Part shown: positions 9,540 to 56,758 of the stretch, one piece after another | Layout of the letters: every line of letters starts with the position of its first letter | How positions within the stretch are numbered: position 1 is the stretch's first letter | NCBI GenBank assembly: GCA_946965045.2 | Contig: OX337236.1 | Coordinates: 1,984,001-2,048,000, forward strand | Direction: 5' to 3' | DNA length: 64,000 nucleotides | Source of the DNA: Epithemia pelagica | Lineage: Eukaryota; Protista; Bacillariophyta | Translations under genes and position numbers: made by a program | The notes under the pieces: model-generated | Told to the model about the DNA's origin: nothing | Seen by the model: only the letters and a program-made list of their open reading frames with translations | Databases searched by the model: none

Positions 9540-11210
9540 TTAGGGAAATCTTTGTATCGCCATGGTGACGCCATATTCTTCGTATTCTGTCCGTCCTAGC
9601 CACAATTGTTGGAAGGAGCCCAAGCTGGTTAGAATGCTCCCACCGATCCATGAAGCGCACGATCGTTCCACGGCATGTCGGCTCGCCAGGACCTTGGTTT
9701 TAAATGTGACGTTTTGGGAGACTTCGTACGACAAGCGTTCCTCCAGACCAGCAAACAGGGATGATCCCCCAGTCAAGAGAATGCTGGCGGCCAAATCTTT
9801 GCGAGCATCGACGTCCCCTACGGCGGACAGTGACGAATGAATGAGTTGATGTAGCGGCAAATCGGACAAAGAAAAGTGCTGATTGAGAATGGACGTGTAT
9901 GGATCAGCCTTTTCATACTCTAGAAACGGCATTTGATCGGCAAAAAGTAATTCGGGCACACGACGAATATCTTTGCCAATCTTTGTGGTCAAGTCAATGA
10001 GAGTTCCATCTGGTAATTCAAAGACTGCCGATTCTCCGCCAGGTGGAGAAGTGTCTGGTTGTGCTTCTTGCTGTTGTTCCTCGTCGCCCTCGTCGCCCTC
10101 CTCGTCCTTTTCTTCATTGTCGTCATCTGTTTTCATTGGATGGTCGCCACCATCGGATGAGGCAAACAATGGAGTGCGGCTGGATTGCCAGTCAGGAAGA
10201 GCAACTTCTTTACTAGAACGTAATTCAAACATGAGATCTTGCATGGCCCAACGATGAAAAATTCCTCGAGTTTGTGTCACTGCCGCCGTACGGCTAGTTT
10301 GTTGATACCTTGGCCGTAACAGTGTTTTATTGTCCAGCAAAGCTTTCCATTGTACGTTTCCCATCCAGTCCCCACCACGTCCATTCCGTCGTTGCGATTG
10401 TTTGAGCAAAAAACCATCTACGACGGGCGTCACACGACATCCACCTGCTCCCAAATCAACCACCAAGGCTGTTTGACGTCCATGCGAAAAGGCTGCCAGC
10501 ATGGGTGCCGGAGCGATAAACATTGCGGGGCAATCCAATTTCTCCACAAGGAGTTCGGTCATTTGCATGAGCTGTTTTCGATGGGCAGCGGCCTGCGCAT
10601 CATGCGATAGTCCGACTAAATGTGTAAATCCTGGAGCAACCGCCAACAATGGATGGACACAAGCATGATCGGGAACTCCCGGTCGCATCATGGTACTGGA
10701 CACACCTGATCCAGTTGCTTTGGTTTTGGTATCGGCACTCTTGTTGTCATCACTGGACGTTGCTACGGTCAAGGACCCACCACCCACGGTATGCTTGAAT
10801 CGATCGCGAACATGCAGAGTGTCAAAAGCACATTGCCACAATTGCTCATAGGCATCCCAATCCACAATATCTTGTCCCTGTTGTAGATAATTGGCCGGAT
10901 GGATAATCGGATGCTCGGCTAGCGATAATGAATCCGATCTCGATGTACTTGTTTGCGTCATGGGTGGCATAGAGGACGGGCTTTGTGCGGCACCCCGCAT
11001 GGGTGTTTGGCATGCACCGGAAGCGAGAGAATGGTTGTAACATGATGTTTGGACGTGGAGTCGGGTTGGTTTCGTCGTGGCTGTCGTCGTGGAACAACCG
11101 ACATAGGATGGGACCACATATTTCGGACTGTCGTCTCCTCCGTACCCAAAACGACTGGTATGAGATCCCACATCACCAATAAAGGATCCAGTTTCGTCAC
11201 CACAATACAT
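9540..11210 (-). CDS. ARP4: Actin-related protein 4 (nuclear ARP)
   Basis: MYCGDE...DVGSHTSRFGYGGDDSPK, VVDLGAG...VTPVVDG, ELPDG, TGGSSLF, SWIGGSILTSLGSFQQLW. Confidence 0.88.
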   Translation of the reverse strand: MYCGDETGSFIGDVGSHTSRFGYGGDDSPKYVVPSYVGCSTTTATTKPTRLHVQTSCYNHSLASGACQTPMRGAAQSPSSMPPMTQTSTSRSDSLSLAEHPIIHPANYLQQGQDIVDWDAYEQLWQCAFDTLHVRDRFKHTVGGGSLTVATSSDDNKSADTKTKATGSGVSSTMMRPGVPDHACVHPLLAVAPGFTHLVGLSHDAQAAAHRKQLMQMTELLVEKLDCPAMFIAPAPMLAAFSHGRQTALVVDLGAGGCRVTPVVDGFLLKQSQRRNGRGGDWMGNVQWKALLDNKTLLRPRYQQTSRTAAVTQTRGIFHRWAMQDLMFELRSSKEVALPDWQSSRTPLFASSDGGDHPMKTDDDNEEKDEEGDEGDEEQQQEAQPDTSPPGGESAVFELPDGTLIDLTTKIGKDIRRVPELLFADQMPFLEYEKADPYTSILNQHFSLSDLPLHQLIHSSLSAVGDVDARKDLAASILLTGGSSLFAGLEERLSYEVSQNVTFKTKVLASRHAVERSCASWIGGSILTSLGSFQQLWLGRTEYEEYGVTMAIQRFP

Positions 11211-19521: not shown

Positions 19522-21037
19522 ATGCTAGAACAGTTGACGTATCCACATCATGGTCGTGGACTTCTCACACCCGTGTTGCCTTTCTTTCCCAAGAGTCACG
19601 CACTTTGTCGAACCATGACCAACCATGAGGTACCCTTTCCAGAAGCCGATATCATTCGTCGTTCGCACGGAGGAGAAAGTCGACGAAGACGACGAATGCC
19701 TGCAGAATGGTCTCGACACAATGCCTGTATCATTCTCTATCCTCATTGGGCCACCACCTTTCGACTCGACAAGGCTCAACGTCAAGTAGAACATGTCGCT
19801 CGGACAATTGCGTCGGTGGGGAAGGAAGGAGTGATTGTCTATTGCAACACGCCATCCGATCGAGACAAACTCCAACAACGATTGGGTCAATGGGAAAACG
19901 GCGACCAGAACATTCAACTGGAATTGTGTCCAAGCAATGACACGTGGGCACGTGATACAGCGCCCACCTTTGTCTATGAACAAACGTCCACCACGAAATC
20001 TGAGTGTTTCCACGATCCTGATGAGCAGGTTGAACAGAAACAAGAGTGGACGTCCTTGGCCGGCTTGGATTGGGAGTTCAATGCTTATGGAGGACCAGAC
20101 GAGGGTATGTATTGGCCCTGTGACTTGGATCGACAAGTGGCGTCGGTGATGTGCCGTCAATTGTCCATACCGTGTCGATCTGTTCCCATTGTGTTGGAAG
20201 GCGGTTCTGTCCACACGGACGGCGAAGGGACCATTCTCACCACCGAAGAATGTTTGTTAAATCCGAATCGCAATCCAACTCTGACCAAAGAATACATTGA
20301 AGAACGGGTCTTGTCAGAACTGGGTGCGTCCAAAATGATTTGGCTTCCATTGGGTCTGGCGTTTGATCATGATACCAATGGACATGTCGATAATTGGGCG
20401 TGCTTTGCTCGTCCCGGGCACGTAATATTGGCCTGGACCGACGACGAACAAGGAGATGCCGTCAATTTTGAACGATGTCGTCAGGCCAAGAAACTGTTGG
20501 AACAAACCAAAGATGCCCAGGGTCGTCACTTGACGGTCCACAAACTGCATCTGCCCTCTCCCATATATTACACACGCGGTGATGTGGACGCGCTCCTCCC
20601 CACTAAAGTCAAACAAGATGATGGCAGTATGAAAAACGTGCCACCCCGAAAAGCTGGTGAACGAATGGCCGGAAGGTACGACATCTAATTGGTTTAACCT
20701 TGAATCGCCTTTGTGGAATTCCTTCATCATTCTGTTCTCACATGAATCTTTGTTGCTGTCAATGTTGGTCATTTGGAAACGTGGTGGAATGCACTAATAT
20801 TTGTTGTCTGTCAGCTACGTTAATTTTTACATTGCCAACGAAGCGGTCATAGTTCCACAATTTGGTGACAATGTCTACGATGCCAAAGCAATTGAGACCT
20901 TGACGGGTCTCTTTGCACCACAGCGAACAGTGGTAGGTGTACCGAGTCGCGAAATCTTGATTGGAGGAGGAAACATCCATTGTATTACGCAACAACTGCC
21001 TTCGGTGAATCAACCAACAACTAATTCCACGACATGA
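19522..21037 (+). CDS. aguA: Agmatine deiminase (Porphyromonas-type PAD family), 2 exons (..20675, 20815..21037)
   Basis: [35 protein letters not shown]. Intron 20676-20814 restores AGSYVNFY; catalytic [11 protein letters not shown]. Start codon uncertain. Confidence 0.92.
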
Positions 21038-50586: not shown

Positions 50587-51771
50587 GGACCGATTCCTTG
50601 AGCACATTTTTGTAGAAACTAGCTACCTTTGTTAACATTGAGCCATGACTTTGCAATAGACCCATTCTTGCAAGCACATGCATTAATATGAGGCATGAAG
50701 CCGTCACTGCCATGGTCTTGGCTAGAGGAAGAGAATCACCCCGTCGTTAGGCTACTTCACGGTGATTCATTCCTTTAGAGGAGGGTCGCCCGGCGCGGAG
50801 GGTAGAATGACGAGAAGGGCAAATGTTCGAGGAGGGCGCATGCCCGACAAGACATGTGCCTGTCGAGTCATTCTCCAGACAAGCCGGGCGCCCGACGAGG
50901 AAGGAATGAGAAATCACAGGGGAGTAATCTGCTTACTTTATATCTAGATATGTAGGTAGTGACTACCGCCCGGTTTTATTATGAGATGGGATGTCGCAGG
51001 GACATAATGTTCCTTTCGCGGTTCACCCATGATGTCGCGCGATTCGCACGATCACTACTTCCCGGCTCTACAATAAAATTCTACTGTAAAATAAAAATGT
51101 GAGACGAACTACCTGCATAGCTAGGTATATAGTTAGTACCCCATACCCATACCCCCATATATTTCTCTGGGTCCCCTTCCCCATAATCTCGGTCGCATTT
51201 GACGTGATGGCGATGGCGATGACGATGGGTTCATTGGACGTTTTGACTCCATTTCGACCGACGGCAACGATCGCGTATACACACTCTCAAAACAATACAT
51301 GGATCAATTGCCCTCCATTATCGATCGGTTGGGCCAGGCTAAACTCGAGGATATTGACGATGTTGAAGCAGAGGCAAGGCGTTTGAGCAATGATCCTGTT
51401 TACCTGCAAATCTTAACTCTTTTGGGACGGCAAATTTTTTACTCCGGTCATTGACCATTTGGTTAAAATTTTTACTTAACAAAATCACCGATCACTTATA
51501 GGATTCTCCACGTAAGCGATGACTCCCAACTCGTGATTCAAAAACCATTGACCATAAGGACAATTCCGAAAATCGAGACTTTGTCGTTAATGTAACTCAA
51601 CAACCAAACCATTTGGTCATTACTCCTTCATACATACTCTTCCATTTGTTACAAGCTTTCAGTAGCCGGTCCAAATGCCGAATTCCGACCGGTAGTTCTT
51701 GCGTACGAGCAGTTTTGGGAGTATTTCGTACCCTCATTTTTGTTGCACCTCCTTCGTCTACGACCTTCACC

Positions 51772-54279
51772 ATGGCAGATCGGTCAACCCAAGACACCGA
51801 CAAGCCTCCTTCGGCTGCGAGGGAACTTGACTTTAGACAGCCTGACTCTGATGATGACGAAGATAACGAAGAAACCTCTGTCCCTTTGATTTCTGCTCAT
51901 ACTCCCACAGAAGAACAAATTAGTGCTTGGAGATCGGAAAACAAGTACATTGATGAACAGATGGCTGCGTCGGACCTGGTTCTATTCAACCCGGTGGCTT
52001 GTGCTCAGGCTTACAAAGACGACGGCCCACTTGGACTATTCTTCCAGTTCATCCCGCGAGGATTCATTGATCGCTTCATGCTCAAGGCCACGCAAGAAGA
52101 ATTGGCCTCCAAGGATGGCAACTCTGGCAAGAAGATTGTCCTTACACCCAAGCTTTTTTGGTGTGTCATTGGATTAGATATCGCATTATCTCTTTGCAAC
52201 AGTACCTCCATCAAGGAACTGCGGAGCTCTAAAATGTTTCTCGGCTCTCTGTCATTCTCCAATTCTATGGCCAGAGACACCTTCACTACCGTCCGTGGTT
52301 CGTTGAGGGTGTATTCGACCTCGACATGTCGCAACATGGAAGACCCGCTGTGGCAAGTCCGACCGCTTCTTGGACACGTTCTTCAAAATTTCGCTTCTGT
52401 TGGGTACGTTGTTGGGCCCGTTGCGCTTGACGAGGCGAGTTGTCCGACCAAAGCAAGGACCAAAGCGTCGTCCTACCTTCCGTCTAAACTGGATAAATTT
52501 GCCATCCGTTTTTACGCTCTTGTTGGTTGGAAGAGCGTTTATACGTTCGCCTTGTGGGATAATGGCACCGGTAATGCACTCAACCAAACGCCTGCCGAAC
52601 GCTTTATGAAGGTCTTTGGTGAACTTTGGTCGTCCTTCAATCAGTTTTCACAAGCGTGCAAAAGTTGGATGCGCAACGCTTGTCCAGTAGCATTTGACAG
52701 CGCATCAATGCTTTGGGTGCTGATGATTGGATTGCTATACAGGTCGATAGCAGGAGCTGCTTCTCATCGCCGCAGCAACGATTCCCAAGTCCATACTGTC
52801 GTGTATATGGACAATTACTATACACGACACGCATTAGCCCGGGCTTGTTCGGATTTCACAGACAATTCCATGAAAGTGACCGGTACCGTCAAGATGAACC
52901 TTGTTGACAAGGTGAACAAACCATCTGTGATCCAGGCAACGAAAGATTTAGAAAAACTTGCTCGTGGTTCTTGGATTTTGGTTCAGGTCTACACGGCCGT
53001 GATTCATCCGGACAGTAAAATACAAAAAGAGAAAGAAAAAAAGGACGGTTATTCTAAGTCGTTACCAAGAGCGAAAGTCGGCTTCAACAAGTCCGATATA
53101 CTCGAGGTCGCCAATGAATACTGTATTGTTGCGAAACGATGCGGTTTCATTGTCTTTCATGATAAAAAGCCCGTCGTTTTCTATACGAATGATCTGGCGG
53201 ATACTCCCCAAGCTTTGTTCGGTGACAAGAGTGACGAGCATGCCGTAAGATGCGTACATGGTCTTGCCACGTTGTTTCGGTGGACGGGGGATTCGTATCA
53301 CGCCAAGCAATCATTCAAGGTCCCAGCCCCTGTGGTGGCATACAATTTGTTCATGAACGGGGTTGATCGGGCGGACCAGATGCGATCGACGAATGCTTGT
53401 CGACGCAAGGAGAAACATCTCCATATGACGATCTGGCATTTTGTCGTGGATCTCTGTATTCTGAATGCGTTCCAAGTGTACCTGAAACTTCGGAATTCGC
53501 AATTGATCGACGCTAAAAAGCAAGGCACAGAAGAAGAAGAAATTCGAATGACCAAAGAGATGCCTTTGAGGGAGTTCAAGAGGAAGGTCTGTGTGGCATT
53601 GTGCATGCCGTATGCAGAAACTTACAATGCCACGAAGAAAACAAATAGCAAAGCCGGTCCACAGGTTGCGTCGGCTGAGAACATTCAAGTCAAGTTGCCA
53701 CCTCGTCCCCCAGCACGATACAAGACACCGCCGGTCCGAGCAAGAAAACTAAGACGTTCTACGTCTTCGACAAGGAAGAGTGCCCGTTTTGAAGTTGACC
53801 TGGAAGCGGATACTCCTGGTGGTGCAAGCAAGGTAACCAAAGCCTCCGAAGCTTCAACGGAAACAGAAAAGACTGTCCAGCCACTCCGTTTTGAGACCAA
53901 TTTGTCTCATCACATTCTTCAACCCAACCCAGTTAATCATGGACGCCGACACAGAAGCACATGCTACTTGTGTAGTATCATTGGCACTGGCGGCACACAT
54001 CCAGTCACGAGCTATGGATGTGTGCAATGTCAACGGTGCTTCCATCCCGAGTGTTTTTCACTCTATCACAACAGTTGGAAGGTGGCCTTTTGCAACGATC
54101 GTTGTAAAGAGATTCGCGATCTGTTAGAGGGTTTCTGGACTGCGAATCCCCATGTCCTCGAATACAACATGGAAGGCGAAGATACACCAACAAAGGAAGA
54201 TGTGGAAGAGTACGAGATTCAACAAGGCAAGAAGGGAATTTGTGCGAAAGAAGAAGACATTCGAAAATTTGGAGAATAA
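51772..54279 (+). CDS. piggyBac transposase (835 aa from ATG 51772), intact
   Basis: DDD triad VALDEAS / YMDNYY / NGVDRADQ, and C-terminal Cys-rich domain CYLC...CVQC..CFHPEC. Confidence 0.92.
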   Translation: MADRSTQDTDKPPSAARELDFRQPDSDDDEDNEETSVPLISAHTPTEEQISAWRSENKYIDEQMAASDLVLFNPVACAQAYKDDGPLGLFFQFIPRGFIDRFMLKATQEELASKDGNSGKKIVLTPKLFWCVIGLDIALSLCNSTSIKELRSSKMFLGSLSFSNSMARDTFTTVRGSLRVYSTSTCRNMEDPLWQVRPLLGHVLQNFASVGYVVGPVALDEASCPTKARTKASSYLPSKLDKFAIRFYALVGWKSVYTFALWDNGTGNALNQTPAERFMKVFGELWSSFNQFSQACKSWMRNACPVAFDSASMLWVLMIGLLYRSIAGAASHRRSNDSQVHTVVYMDNYYTRHALARACSDFTDNSMKVTGTVKMNLVDKVNKPSVIQATKDLEKLARGSWILVQVYTAVIHPDSKIQKEKEKKDGYSKSLPRAKVGFNKSDILEVANEYCIVAKRCGFIVFHDKKPVVFYTNDLADTPQALFGDKSDEHAVRCVHGLATLFRWTGDSYHAKQSFKVPAPVVAYNLFMNGVDRADQMRSTNACRRKEKHLHMTIWHFVVDLCILNAFQVYLKLRNSQLIDAKKQGTEEEEIRMTKEMPLREFKRKVCVALCMPYAETYNATKKTNSKAGPQVASAENIQVKLPPRPPARYKTPPVRARKLRRSTSSTRKSARFEVDLEADTPGGASKVTKASEASTETEKTVQPLRFETNLSHHILQPNPVNHGRRHRSTCYLCSIIGTGGTHPVTSYGCVQCQRCFHPECFSLYHNSWKVAFCNDRCKEIRDLLEGFWTANPHVLEYNMEGEDTPTKEDVEEYEIQQGKKGICAKEEDIRKFGE

Positions 54280-54346
54280 GAGTGAGAGATTTGATTCATT
54301 GAAAACTAGGTACACGATAAGATATTCAATAATTTAGTAATGAGGT

Positions 54347-55090
54347 TTATTCTACGCTGTCATCTGTAGAGGAGGCCGAATTGTCATCACTATCTTCGTG
54401 GTTGGTAGCCCCTTCTTTGAGGGACGAATCGGCGTCGAATGGAGCTCCGGAATTACGGAATCCAACGTAGTCGCCATTTGGATCGGGGTACATTTTGTGA
54501 ATGATTAGCTCAATACACTGTGGAATCCGAACTCGGTTCCAACGACCCAATGATCCATACTTGGACGCGATATAGAACTTGTAGAGGTGATGGCGTGTGG
54601 CGCGATTGTGTCCGTTGTTTCGTTTATGGGCTTCAAGACCTGCGGTTTGAAGGGCAATTTCATAAGTCACGCCATCACAGGGGGAAAGTCCACATTGGTC
54701 GCAAAGAAGGTCGTTGTTGTTTTGTATCAAAGGAGAGACAACTGCTGCTGGTTTGGAGTCTTCGGCTTTGTCCTCCTTGTCTTGTTTGTCTCCTTCAGTT
54801 TCGGTGTTAACTCCTTTGGTCCGTTCCTTGTCTTCATCTTTCTTGATCATTGCCTTCACGTCGGAATCGATGATCTGCTGGTTGATTGCTTGAAGATCGA
54901 TTTTCTTGTTCTCTTGTTGTGCTTGTTGTAACAATTCACCACCCAACGGACTTAGGAAGAGAGGGGATGACGATGCTTTGCAAACATGCTTGTAGGTAGC
55001 GGGATCCTCTTCGTCTATGTAAATCGTCTGTGATTCAGATGTTGGAGTACTTGGCTTGTACCGTTTCGAGTGTTTGGAAGGAGAGTCCAT
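54347..55090 (-). CDS. Accessory ORF inside piggyBac with P2X7-ballast/KolX-like C-terminal domain (247 aa)
   Basis: CDQCGLSPC...RHHLYKFY....YGSLG..NRVRIPQCI..IIHKMYP...GDYVGF aligns by eye to the P2X7 C-terminus (RHCAYRCY....FG...ILPSCC..RIRKEFP...GQYSGF). Confidence 0.7.
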   Translation of the reverse strand: MDSPSKHSKRYKPSTPTSESQTIYIDEEDPATYKHVCKASSSPLFLSPLGGELLQQAQQENKKIDLQAINQQIIDSDVKAMIKKDEDKERTKGVNTETEGDKQDKEDKAEDSKPAAVVSPLIQNNNDLLCDQCGLSPCDGVTYEIALQTAGLEAHKRNNGHNRATRHHLYKFYIASKYGSLGRWNRVRIPQCIELIIHKMYPDPNGDYVGFRNSGAPFDADSSLKEGATNHEDSDDNSASSTDDSVE

Positions 55091-56758
55091 GGTGCAACGG
55101 TCGTAAGGACGACACTAATGAAGCACAGTTACTGCTTTTGGATTCGAGTCCTGTAACAAAATTCCCTATAGATTATTCTTACGTGGTTTGGAATCCCCAA
55201 GAGATTTTTTGTCCATTTTGTTAAGTGGCGAAATGGGTCACTAAAAATGTGAAATGACCGACCATATGGTCAAAAGTAGAGGTCGCCGTCCCAAAAGAGT
55301 TAAATTCCTCGATCAAGAGCGCACGGATTCGTGAGGGCGGATACTATTCCACTTTTCAGGACTTGTTTGCGATACAGAGACGTAAATTCAATCAAACTGA
55401 TGTAAATGAATTTGTCAGAACGCGGCGGCCGAAGAGTTACGACGTGCTTGCAGGGAAGCTGGATGACGCGAGTGAAATCGAGCGTTTCCACATAGCGCGA
55501 ACAGCAGATTCTACAATCACTGTGGCACGACGAAATGCGGCTTTTCCAACAGATATATTCGGCAACAGTGGCACGGGTGAGCTTGTACATCTCATACCAG
55601 ATTCGCCAGTTTGTTCGTTGTACTTTGTTGATGTGGGTATTTGGGTCCTACCGTTGGATGAAATCGCGATGCCAGCCGCGCGGAGGCCAAAACGAAATCG
55701 CCTCGACGTTGGTGAATTTGAAGCAAAACGGCGGAAAATGGTTATTAACGGTTTCAAAAAGACAAACAGGTCAAATAAAGTGGCCGATAGCTCTCTCAAA
55801 CGAAGCTTATTGAATCGCTTGAGATTGCGCTTGCAAGGGTACTATTTGGACAGACACCCGTGCGTCTTGATCATTCCACTGGCCGATACCAAATTCCTAC
55901 GAAACTGGGACGACGGAATCGAGTACGAGGCCTTGGTGCTTGTTTCTGAAGACGATACCACAGATGAGAGAATTCCTCCTGATCAAGTCTTCCGAGACAT
56001 AGGATTAACGAGGAAGCTACCAGAATGCGAACCACGCGAGATTCATATGGCTGCCACCTTGCTAGTGACAGCTATGAAAGCGCTAGCCTTGTCAATGTCG
56101 ACGAAACCGAAAAATCATTTCGAAGCATCAACAACTAACAGAAATGAGCTCGTCTCAACGTATGAAAAAATCCAGGTAGAGGGCACAATCGCAGTTCCTA
56201 CCCTTGTTGCGAACGCAGCCAACACTGCTAGGGTTGCCAAGGTCAAATTCGGAGCGGAAAAAGATCCGACCTTTGACCACATAGCTGTTGATCCGACGTT
56301 ACTTCTAATGAAGACTGCTGTTGTGGCATCGGCCCAAGTTGGGGAACGTTTGCTTCCATCTTGCCCGCCGTTAGAAGATTGGACCGCCGAGGACGACATG
56401 CAGGCTCGAAGATACCTGGCAGAGAAACATGCCAGAACGACCATTCCTGCTGAAATCCAGATCTCCAGATCCTAGCTTGGCCTGGACCGTCATCATGTGG
56501 GGACGCTTCGCCCTGGAAAAGCAGCTTGAGGGCGACCGTCATGCCGAGGAGCCGGTCGCATAGGCCTCCTAGACGATAACCGTCCCAGTCCCATAAATTT
56601 TTTCGGTCGCATTTGACGCGATGACGGTATCTTTATCTTTTTGGGTACAGGTCGTGAGATTGCATGAATGACTTCTCCAAAGGGATCCAAAATCCAAAGT
56701 ACAGTTCTCATGTTCTTGCACTGTTGCCTGTTGAGTGAACGGTGCGTGGGAAAATACA

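Follow-up and report, generated by a model that had tools for sequence, protein, structure and literature searches.

A piggyBac transposon of the diatom Epithemia pelagica that pairs its transposase gene with a convergent gene for a KolX-like protein of predicted ballast fold

Introduction

What might a second gene be doing in a piggyBac transposon? The question is raised by an element of 3,883 bp at positions 51417-55299 of a 64,000-bp stretch of DNA from the diatom Epithemia pelagica (contig OX337236.1, positions 1,984,001 to 2,048,000, assembly GCA_946965045.2; the whole stretch is called the window here), which contains two convergent genes, one for a transposase and one for a protein of 247 amino acids, ORF2 (open reading frame 2). 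Canonical piggyBacs (T. ni IFP2, piggyBat) share with this element the TTAA target, short terminal inverted repeats (TIRs) and a three-aspartate (DDD) transposase with a Cys-rich C-terminus, whereas they encode the transposase alone; their TIRs are of the CCCTAGA type, in contrast to CTCTTTT at the start of the window TIR, although its sister families have TIRs beginning with CCCTTT.

A second protein is known from another group of transposons. In the Kolobok elements of the Kol0 lineage the second protein, KolX, adopts the fold of the cytoplasmic ballast, and the P2X7 receptor is likely to have acquired its ballast from it (Kojima & Bao 2022, Mob DNA 13:24, PMC9587614). The same paper noted KolX-like proteins, with most of the zinc cysteines missing, in piggyBacs of the red alga Gracilariopsis chorda and of Phytophthora infestans, in a treatment of one sentence and two sequences (piggyBac-2_GrCh_2p and piggyBac-14_PI_2p in its Data S6). 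A literature search found no other relevant paper mentioning KolX, and no paper on two-gene piggyBacs in diatoms. A preliminary description of the window, made from the sequence alone, had reported one element with perfect TIRs, TTAA target site duplications (TSDs), an intact DDD transposase and a convergent 247-residue ORF, the stop codons lying 67 bp apart, and all of these points were confirmed. Its description of KolX as a ballast-type accessory protein of Kolobok was right according to PMC9587614. The proposal of an undescribed lineage had to be given up, as the kind was already catalogued by Kojima & Bao. The element is a diatom instance of this published two-gene kind, and the finding extends known work rather than introducing a new kind of element; the selection, the co-divergence and the range from diatoms to oomycetes described below go beyond the published sentence.

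ORF2 resembles the C-terminal part of the P2X7 ballast

The reading frame of ORF2 is uninterrupted over 247 codons and encodes a basic N-terminal region followed by a conserved block of helices, a linker rich in Lys, Glu and Asp, the ballast-fold domain and an acidic tail. The translation carries CDQCGLSPC (C130, C133 and C138) and RHHLYKFYIASKYGSLGRWNRVRIPQCIELIIHKMYPDPNGDYVGF (residues 166-211), so that both the CxxC...PC knuckle and the RHxxY...GF motif given in the preliminary description are present. The Pfam family PF20478 (P2RX7_C) was matched by residues 157-212 with 29.1 bits against a cut-off of 23.5, the match spanning only the last 56 of the 192 profile positions (137-192), and the C-terminal half taken alone scored 30.9 bits. 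In a BLASTP comparison, residues 127-212 were 33% identical to the C-terminus of piggyBac-2_GrCh_2p (E 1e-13). An exhaustive profile-free search gave 447 matches at E <= 0.001, mostly of 80-250 amino acids, and supplied the alignment of 119 sequences used for modelling.

The AlphaFold model of ORF2 had a predicted local distance difference test score (pLDDT) above 90 across residues 130-212. With this model as query, the best 13 Foldseek matches in the PDB were all P2X7 receptors, with poor E-values (0.3) because a short domain was set against a chain of ~550 residues. Realignment of these 13 entries with VIA-align gave Z scores of 6.6-8.2 and a root-mean-square deviation of 2.7-3.0 Å over ~85 residues, residues 129-215 of the model corresponding to P2X7 478-595; the next unrelated chain had a Z of 2.7. 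Searching the PDB by sequence had yielded only a weak P2X7 match (E 0.13), a lead later confirmed by the fold. No usable match came from a feature search of the ESM Atlas with ORF2, and a shape search of the same atlas pointed to a PF20478 cluster with template modelling scores of 0.34/0.47, which is supportive but weak. Judged from the predicted model, the ballast-fold assignment of ORF2 is sound, limited to the C-terminal part of the ballast. Pfam, the predicted fold and BLASTP to piggyBac-2_GrCh_2p thus agree with the ballast/KolX type proposed in the preliminary description, and the structural match to the ballast domain on which that proposal had been staked was found.

The N-terminal half of ORF2 matched no Pfam family. 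Its block (SPLFLSPLG ... IDL..I) is conserved among the diatom homologues in an alignment referred to here as A1, with helices predicted at residues 30-39, 48-60 and 66-91. A protein of 159 amino acids from elsewhere, P0082, matched this block only (residues 3-111, E 4e-7), which makes the block a separate conserved module. The acidic tail after the ballast domain is also present in several distant relatives.

The likeness to the P2X7 ballast (PDB 6u9v/6u9w, 9e3m-q), and to nanor-like ZCD proteins, lies in the fold of the last ~85-120 residues. ORF2 differs in that it is not joined to an ion channel and has no counterpart of the initial ~135 positions of the PF20478 profile or of the ballast's N-terminal two thirds. 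The contacts of guanosine diphosphate (GDP) in rat P2X7 are R546, H547, R574, R578 and K583 (Rump et al. 2020, PMC7016195), and zinc is coordinated there by 7-8 cysteines in three clusters, PxWCxCx2C, LCCRx3GxC and PSC(C/S)x3IR (PMC7016195). By HMMER alignment ORF2 retains two of the five GDP contacts, R546-H547 being R166-H167, a dyad invariant in alignment A1. The other three positions are changed (R574 to E194, R578 to H198 and K583 to D203), two of them to acidic residues, and the replacements are invariant across six aligned diatom ORF2 sequences. Also kept are Y550 (as Y170), P570-x-C572 (with C572 as C192) and the final (F/Y)P...G.Y.GF. The ballast domain of ORF2 has only four cysteines, C130, C133, C138 and C192, in place of the 7-8 of P2X7: the first cluster is altered to CxxCGxxPC, the second is missing, and the third is reduced to one cysteine with R changed to H.

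ORF2 is retained with the transposase in several diatom families

Five homologues of ORF2, with 98, 64, 47, 44 and 44% identity, were found by a word-indexed protein search, all in ENA assembly ERZ21939226, which probably comes from a close relative of the source organism. They occupy seven loci (L001-L007), at every one of which ORF2 is convergent with a PF13843 gene. The copies at L001-L003 belong to the same family as the window copy: they have the same TIRs and a length of 3,876 bp, lie between unrelated host genes, and show sequence identities of 99.4-99.8% among themselves and of 98.3-98.4% with the window copy. TTAA TSDs were seen at L002, L003, L004, L006 and L007, and the L001 copy is flanked by ATAA on both sides (L001:5795-5798 and 9675-9678), a non-canonical target duplication. 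Three further families have TIRs of their own, CCCTTTCAGCCCGGCA, CCCTTTTAGCCCTGCC and CTCTTTTGACCCGGC, which are related to the window TIR, and all have TTAA duplications. Other piggyBacs with the same ORF2, which the preliminary description had proposed to look for, therefore exist as further copies, as at least three other diatom families and, as shown below, as an oomycete relative.

With different flanks and TSDs at each copy, the element moves as a unit. In DNA contigs from the sequencing runs of the source organism, the k-mer depth over the element was ~3.1-3.6 times that of the flanks. The window element is probably autonomous and has recently transposed. A copy of 2,245 bp at L004:5795-8039, with its own TIRs and TTAA, is internally deleted and has lost most of the transposase; it keeps an intact ORF2 of 262 amino acids. 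The right end of the L005 copy has been lost, so that no TIR pair was found there, and L008 and L009 are decayed remnants. No stand-alone intact ORF2 paralogue was found in ERZ21939226. A DUF6589-type ORF (L005:9854-12837) adjoins the truncated L005 copy, which may reflect nested transposon insertions.

When families were compared, maximum-likelihood ratios of non-synonymous to synonymous substitution (dN/dS, omega) were 0.012-0.025 for the transposase, while those for ORF2 were 0.011-0.048 apart from a single pair with 0.235. Since dS is saturated at this distance and its NG86 estimate undefined, these values are rough and upper-bound-like, with dN far below dS. Purifying selection acts on the two genes with about equal strength. 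The ingroup topology, with ((window, L001-L003), L007) against (L005, L006), was equal in the ORF2 and transposase trees, and across several families the two genes have diverged together. Both checks named in the preliminary description, co-phylogeny and purifying selection, accordingly turned out in favour of a maintained second gene.

The transposase places the element in the piggyBac superfamily

The start of the transposase was taken as the first plausible ATG (51772) of a long frame on the plus strand. The resulting protein of 835 amino acids matched Pfam PF13843 (DDE_Tnp_1_7) with E 2e-26. Alignment with piggyBat (9c0f) showed an intact DDD triad, D220 (LDE), D347 (YMDNYY) and D532 (GVDRADQ). 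Residues ~701-767 aligned weakly to the Cys-rich domain of the same structure, and the pattern C..C...C..C..H..C is visible in the C-terminal translation. From these sequence features, namely the TTAA TSD, the short TIRs, the DDE_Tnp_1_7 domain with DDD and the Cys-rich C-terminus, the element can be assigned to the piggyBac superfamily. Membership of Kolobok (Kol0) was considered and rejected, as the sole transposase is of the PF13843 piggyBac type and the termini are CT...AG, not 5'-RR...YY-3'.

An oomycete relative and distant ballast-like proteins

Outside ERZ21939226 the nearest named transposase was that of Nothophytophthora sp. Chile5 (36% identity), and Phytophthora nicotianae was also among the near relatives. 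On the Nothophytophthora contig (MBAC02006405.1) an unannotated ORF on the minus strand (L017:2673-3119) is convergent with the transposase gene and overlaps its end slightly. It matched the ORF2 family profile (hmmsearch E 2.8e-14), and its C-terminal end looks decayed or spliced. With this ORF the two-gene arrangement extends over diatoms and oomycetes, and its age within the stramenopiles is therefore probably great. ORF2 was also sought beside the partial transposase of P. nicotianae (L018) and was not found.

A scan of metagenomes with alignment A1 gave six distant ballast-like loci, none with a piggyBac transposase nearby. One distant protein of 238 amino acids, P0015 (L020:3484-4200), is a fusion of a ballast-like domain (PF20478, 27.1 bits) with an RPA70 N-terminal domain (Rep-A_N, PF04057, 35.5 bits); on its metagenome scaffold the gene adjoins RRN3, and no transposase was seen there.

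Comparison with known two-gene transposons

The closest published counterparts are piggyBac-2_GrCh and piggyBac-14_PI. These share with the diatom elements the motifs CxxCGxxPC and R..Y..(Y/F)....G.LG...R..IP.C....I...P...G.Y.GF, in this order, and the loss of most of the seven cysteines. They differ in host, diatoms being unlisted for this kind in PMC9587614, and in the second protein, which is longer in the diatom (247 amino acids) and has a helical N-terminal block and an acidic tail common to the diatom families. Furthermore, at least four families are present in one diatom genome, and selection and co-divergence are documented here and not in PMC9587614. With KolX of Kol0 the diatom ORF2 has in common that it is a ballast-fold accessory protein of a TTAA-targeting cut-and-paste transposon (PMC9587614); the differences are that the diatom transposase is piggyBac (PF13843), that the element ends are CTC...GAG after TTAA, and that KolX has seven zinc cysteines where ORF2 has four.

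Possible roles of ORF2

We consider it fairly probable that the whole is best explained as an autonomous, recently moved two-protein piggyBac of a stramenopile clade, with ORF2 as a cofactor or regulator of transposition. The element, carried by a raphid pennate diatom, would belong to a stramenopile piggyBac clade that encodes a DDD transposase and a convergent KolX-like protein. ORF2 would be built from the helical N-terminal block, the charged linker, a domain of ~85 residues folded like the final third of the P2X7 ballast, and the acidic tail, and could be a nuclear protein that assists or regulates transposition of its own element. The reduced cysteine set (C130, C133, C138 and C192) probably holds a single zinc and not the dinuclear site of P2X7, and the protein would probably act by contacts with other proteins or with nucleic acids, made in the transpososome or during excision/repair, not as a P2X7-like GDP sensor. 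A reduced, probably single-zinc module that regulates or assists transposition of its own element through macromolecular contacts is favoured by the three changed GDP contacts together with the absent middle cysteine cluster, and we put this more specific version forward tentatively.

Several points weigh against a cofactor of transposition. The role is deduced solely from linkage, selection and co-divergence, and the single-zinc reading, itself only probable, comes from the cysteine set. The dS saturation already described makes the between-family omega values imprecise; between the window copy and L001 there are 5 synonymous and 6 non-synonymous codon changes in ORF2, an omega of ~0.3 that is weak alone. 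The element was found in no RNA run searched. A related transposase in ERZ21939226 (L019:5001-7109, 59% identity, 702 amino acids), whose protein cluster has 13 member sequences, had no ORF2 detectable within 5 kb; L019 represents either a decayed copy or a family from which the partner has gone, and since it stands without ORF2 the partner may be dispensable or may be supplied in trans. Finally, no piggyBac transposase is near the distant ballast-like small proteins at L010-L016 and L020, so that the wider ballast-like family cannot be called piggyBac-linked.

The alternative that survives best, which we regard as unlikely, is that ORF2 has long been carried as a passenger which benefits the element through effects on the host, for instance in anti-silencing, chromatin handling or the response to DNA damage after excision, and stands outside the transposition reaction. 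Chromatin or chaperone-like proteins typically have such an acidic C-terminal tail and K/E-rich linker, P0015 shows a ballast-like domain fused to the RPA70 N-terminal protein-interaction domain in a non-transposon context, and the L019 locus has a related transposase and no ORF2. However, Kolobok Kol0, a second superfamily with TTAA as its target, also has this domain as a partner (PMC9587614), which points to a role linked with this type of transposition and not with one host, and Pfam detects no chromatin-binding domain in ORF2.

It is improbable that ORF2 senses guanine nucleotides and zinc in the manner of the P2X7 ballast and so gates transposition by cellular GTP/GDP (guanosine tri- and diphosphate). 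The fold of ORF2 does match P2X7 478-595, the stretch carrying the GDP site, and the R166-H167 dyad, Y170 and C192 are retained. Yet three GDP contacts out of five carry the invariant replacements E194, H198 and D203, ORF2 has no counterpart of the middle cluster LCCRx3GxC or of the ballast's N-terminal two thirds, and GDP binding is only a conjecture even for the ballast-like proteins of animals (PMC7016195). That ORF2 is a once-captured host fragment or a functionless chance frame is hardly credible, and both readings were rejected on the multi-family conservation: nothing was found in their favour beyond the small size of ORF2 and the absent RNA data, whereas ORF2 has an equivalent place and the same orientation in four copies of the window family and in at least three other families, the dN/dS values are far under 1, an oomycete relative and the published red-alga and Phytophthora cases exist, and no stand-alone intact paralogue was found in ERZ21939226.

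If ORF2 is a cofactor or regulator of transposition, the role could be a wider one. It is possible, if rather doubtful, that two unrelated TTAA-targeting superfamilies, represented by Kolobok Kol0 and the stramenopile/red-alga piggyBac clade, share the ballast-fold protein as an obligatory cofactor or regulator. In that case the ballast fold would serve TTAA cut-and-paste transposition, for example at hairpin or four-base overhang intermediates or in coupling excision to repair, and the P2X7 ballast would descend from a transposition factor. Among the diatom families are several intact two-gene copies, nearly identical and evidently mobile until recently, with which the transposase can be tested with and without ORF2, and the results would bear on the role of the ballast fold and on the possible regulation of piggyBac-type vectors.

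Features of the element and its insertion site

The features of the element are collected in Table 1. TIR and TTAA together form a 19-nt pair with 100% complementarity, and this 19-nt string had two matches only in the 64-kb window at <=3 mismatches, against none in 100 shuffles. The subterminal repeats would probably serve as transposase-binding sites.

Table 1. Features of the two-gene piggyBac element and its flanks (positions in the window)
Feature	Position	Strand	Evidence or remark
Host ORF, upstream piece, split by the insertion; resumes at 55304-56475	51203-51412	+	frame rejoined after in-silico removal
Left TSD, TTAA	51413-51416		identical TTAA at 55300-55303
Left TIR, CTCTTTTGGGACGGC	51417-51431	+	perfect 15-bp match to right end
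Left subterminal repeats (GACCAT..TGGTC-type, ACTTAACAAAAT)	51445-51485		inverted pairs mirroring 55215-55273
piggyBac transposase, 835 aa, ATG to stop	51772-54279	+	PF13843 and piggyBat 9c0f alignment
Spacer between the two convergent stop codons, 67 bp	54280-54346
ORF2, KolX-like accessory protein, 247 aa	54347-55090	-	translation, Pfam, fold, alignment
Predicted ballast-fold (P2RX7_C-like) domain, ORF2 residues 129-215	54446-54706	-	contains C130, C133, C138, C192, R166-H167
ORF2 N-terminal conserved block, ~residues 26-92	54815-55015	-	alignment A1 of diatom homologues
Right subterminal repeats mirroring the left ones	55215-55273		inverted pairs
Right TIR	55285-55299	-	inverted copy of left CTCTTTTGGGACGGC
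Right TSD, TTAA	55300-55303

A host gene for agmatine deiminase lies elsewhere in the window, at 19522-20688; its best named relatives are in Epithemia, Nitzschia, Cylindrotheca, Seminavis and Pseudo-nitzschia, which points to a raphid pennate diatom, and the best match overall, on an ENA contig, was 96% identical. When the element and one TTAA were removed, the two pieces of the host ORF joined as a single open frame of 461 codons. Since the removal restores this frame, the insertion took place inside a coding sequence that had not yet decayed, and is hence recent. The insertion probably knocked out a gene. The rejoined 461-codon ORF matched no Pfam family, and possibly belongs itself to another repeat.

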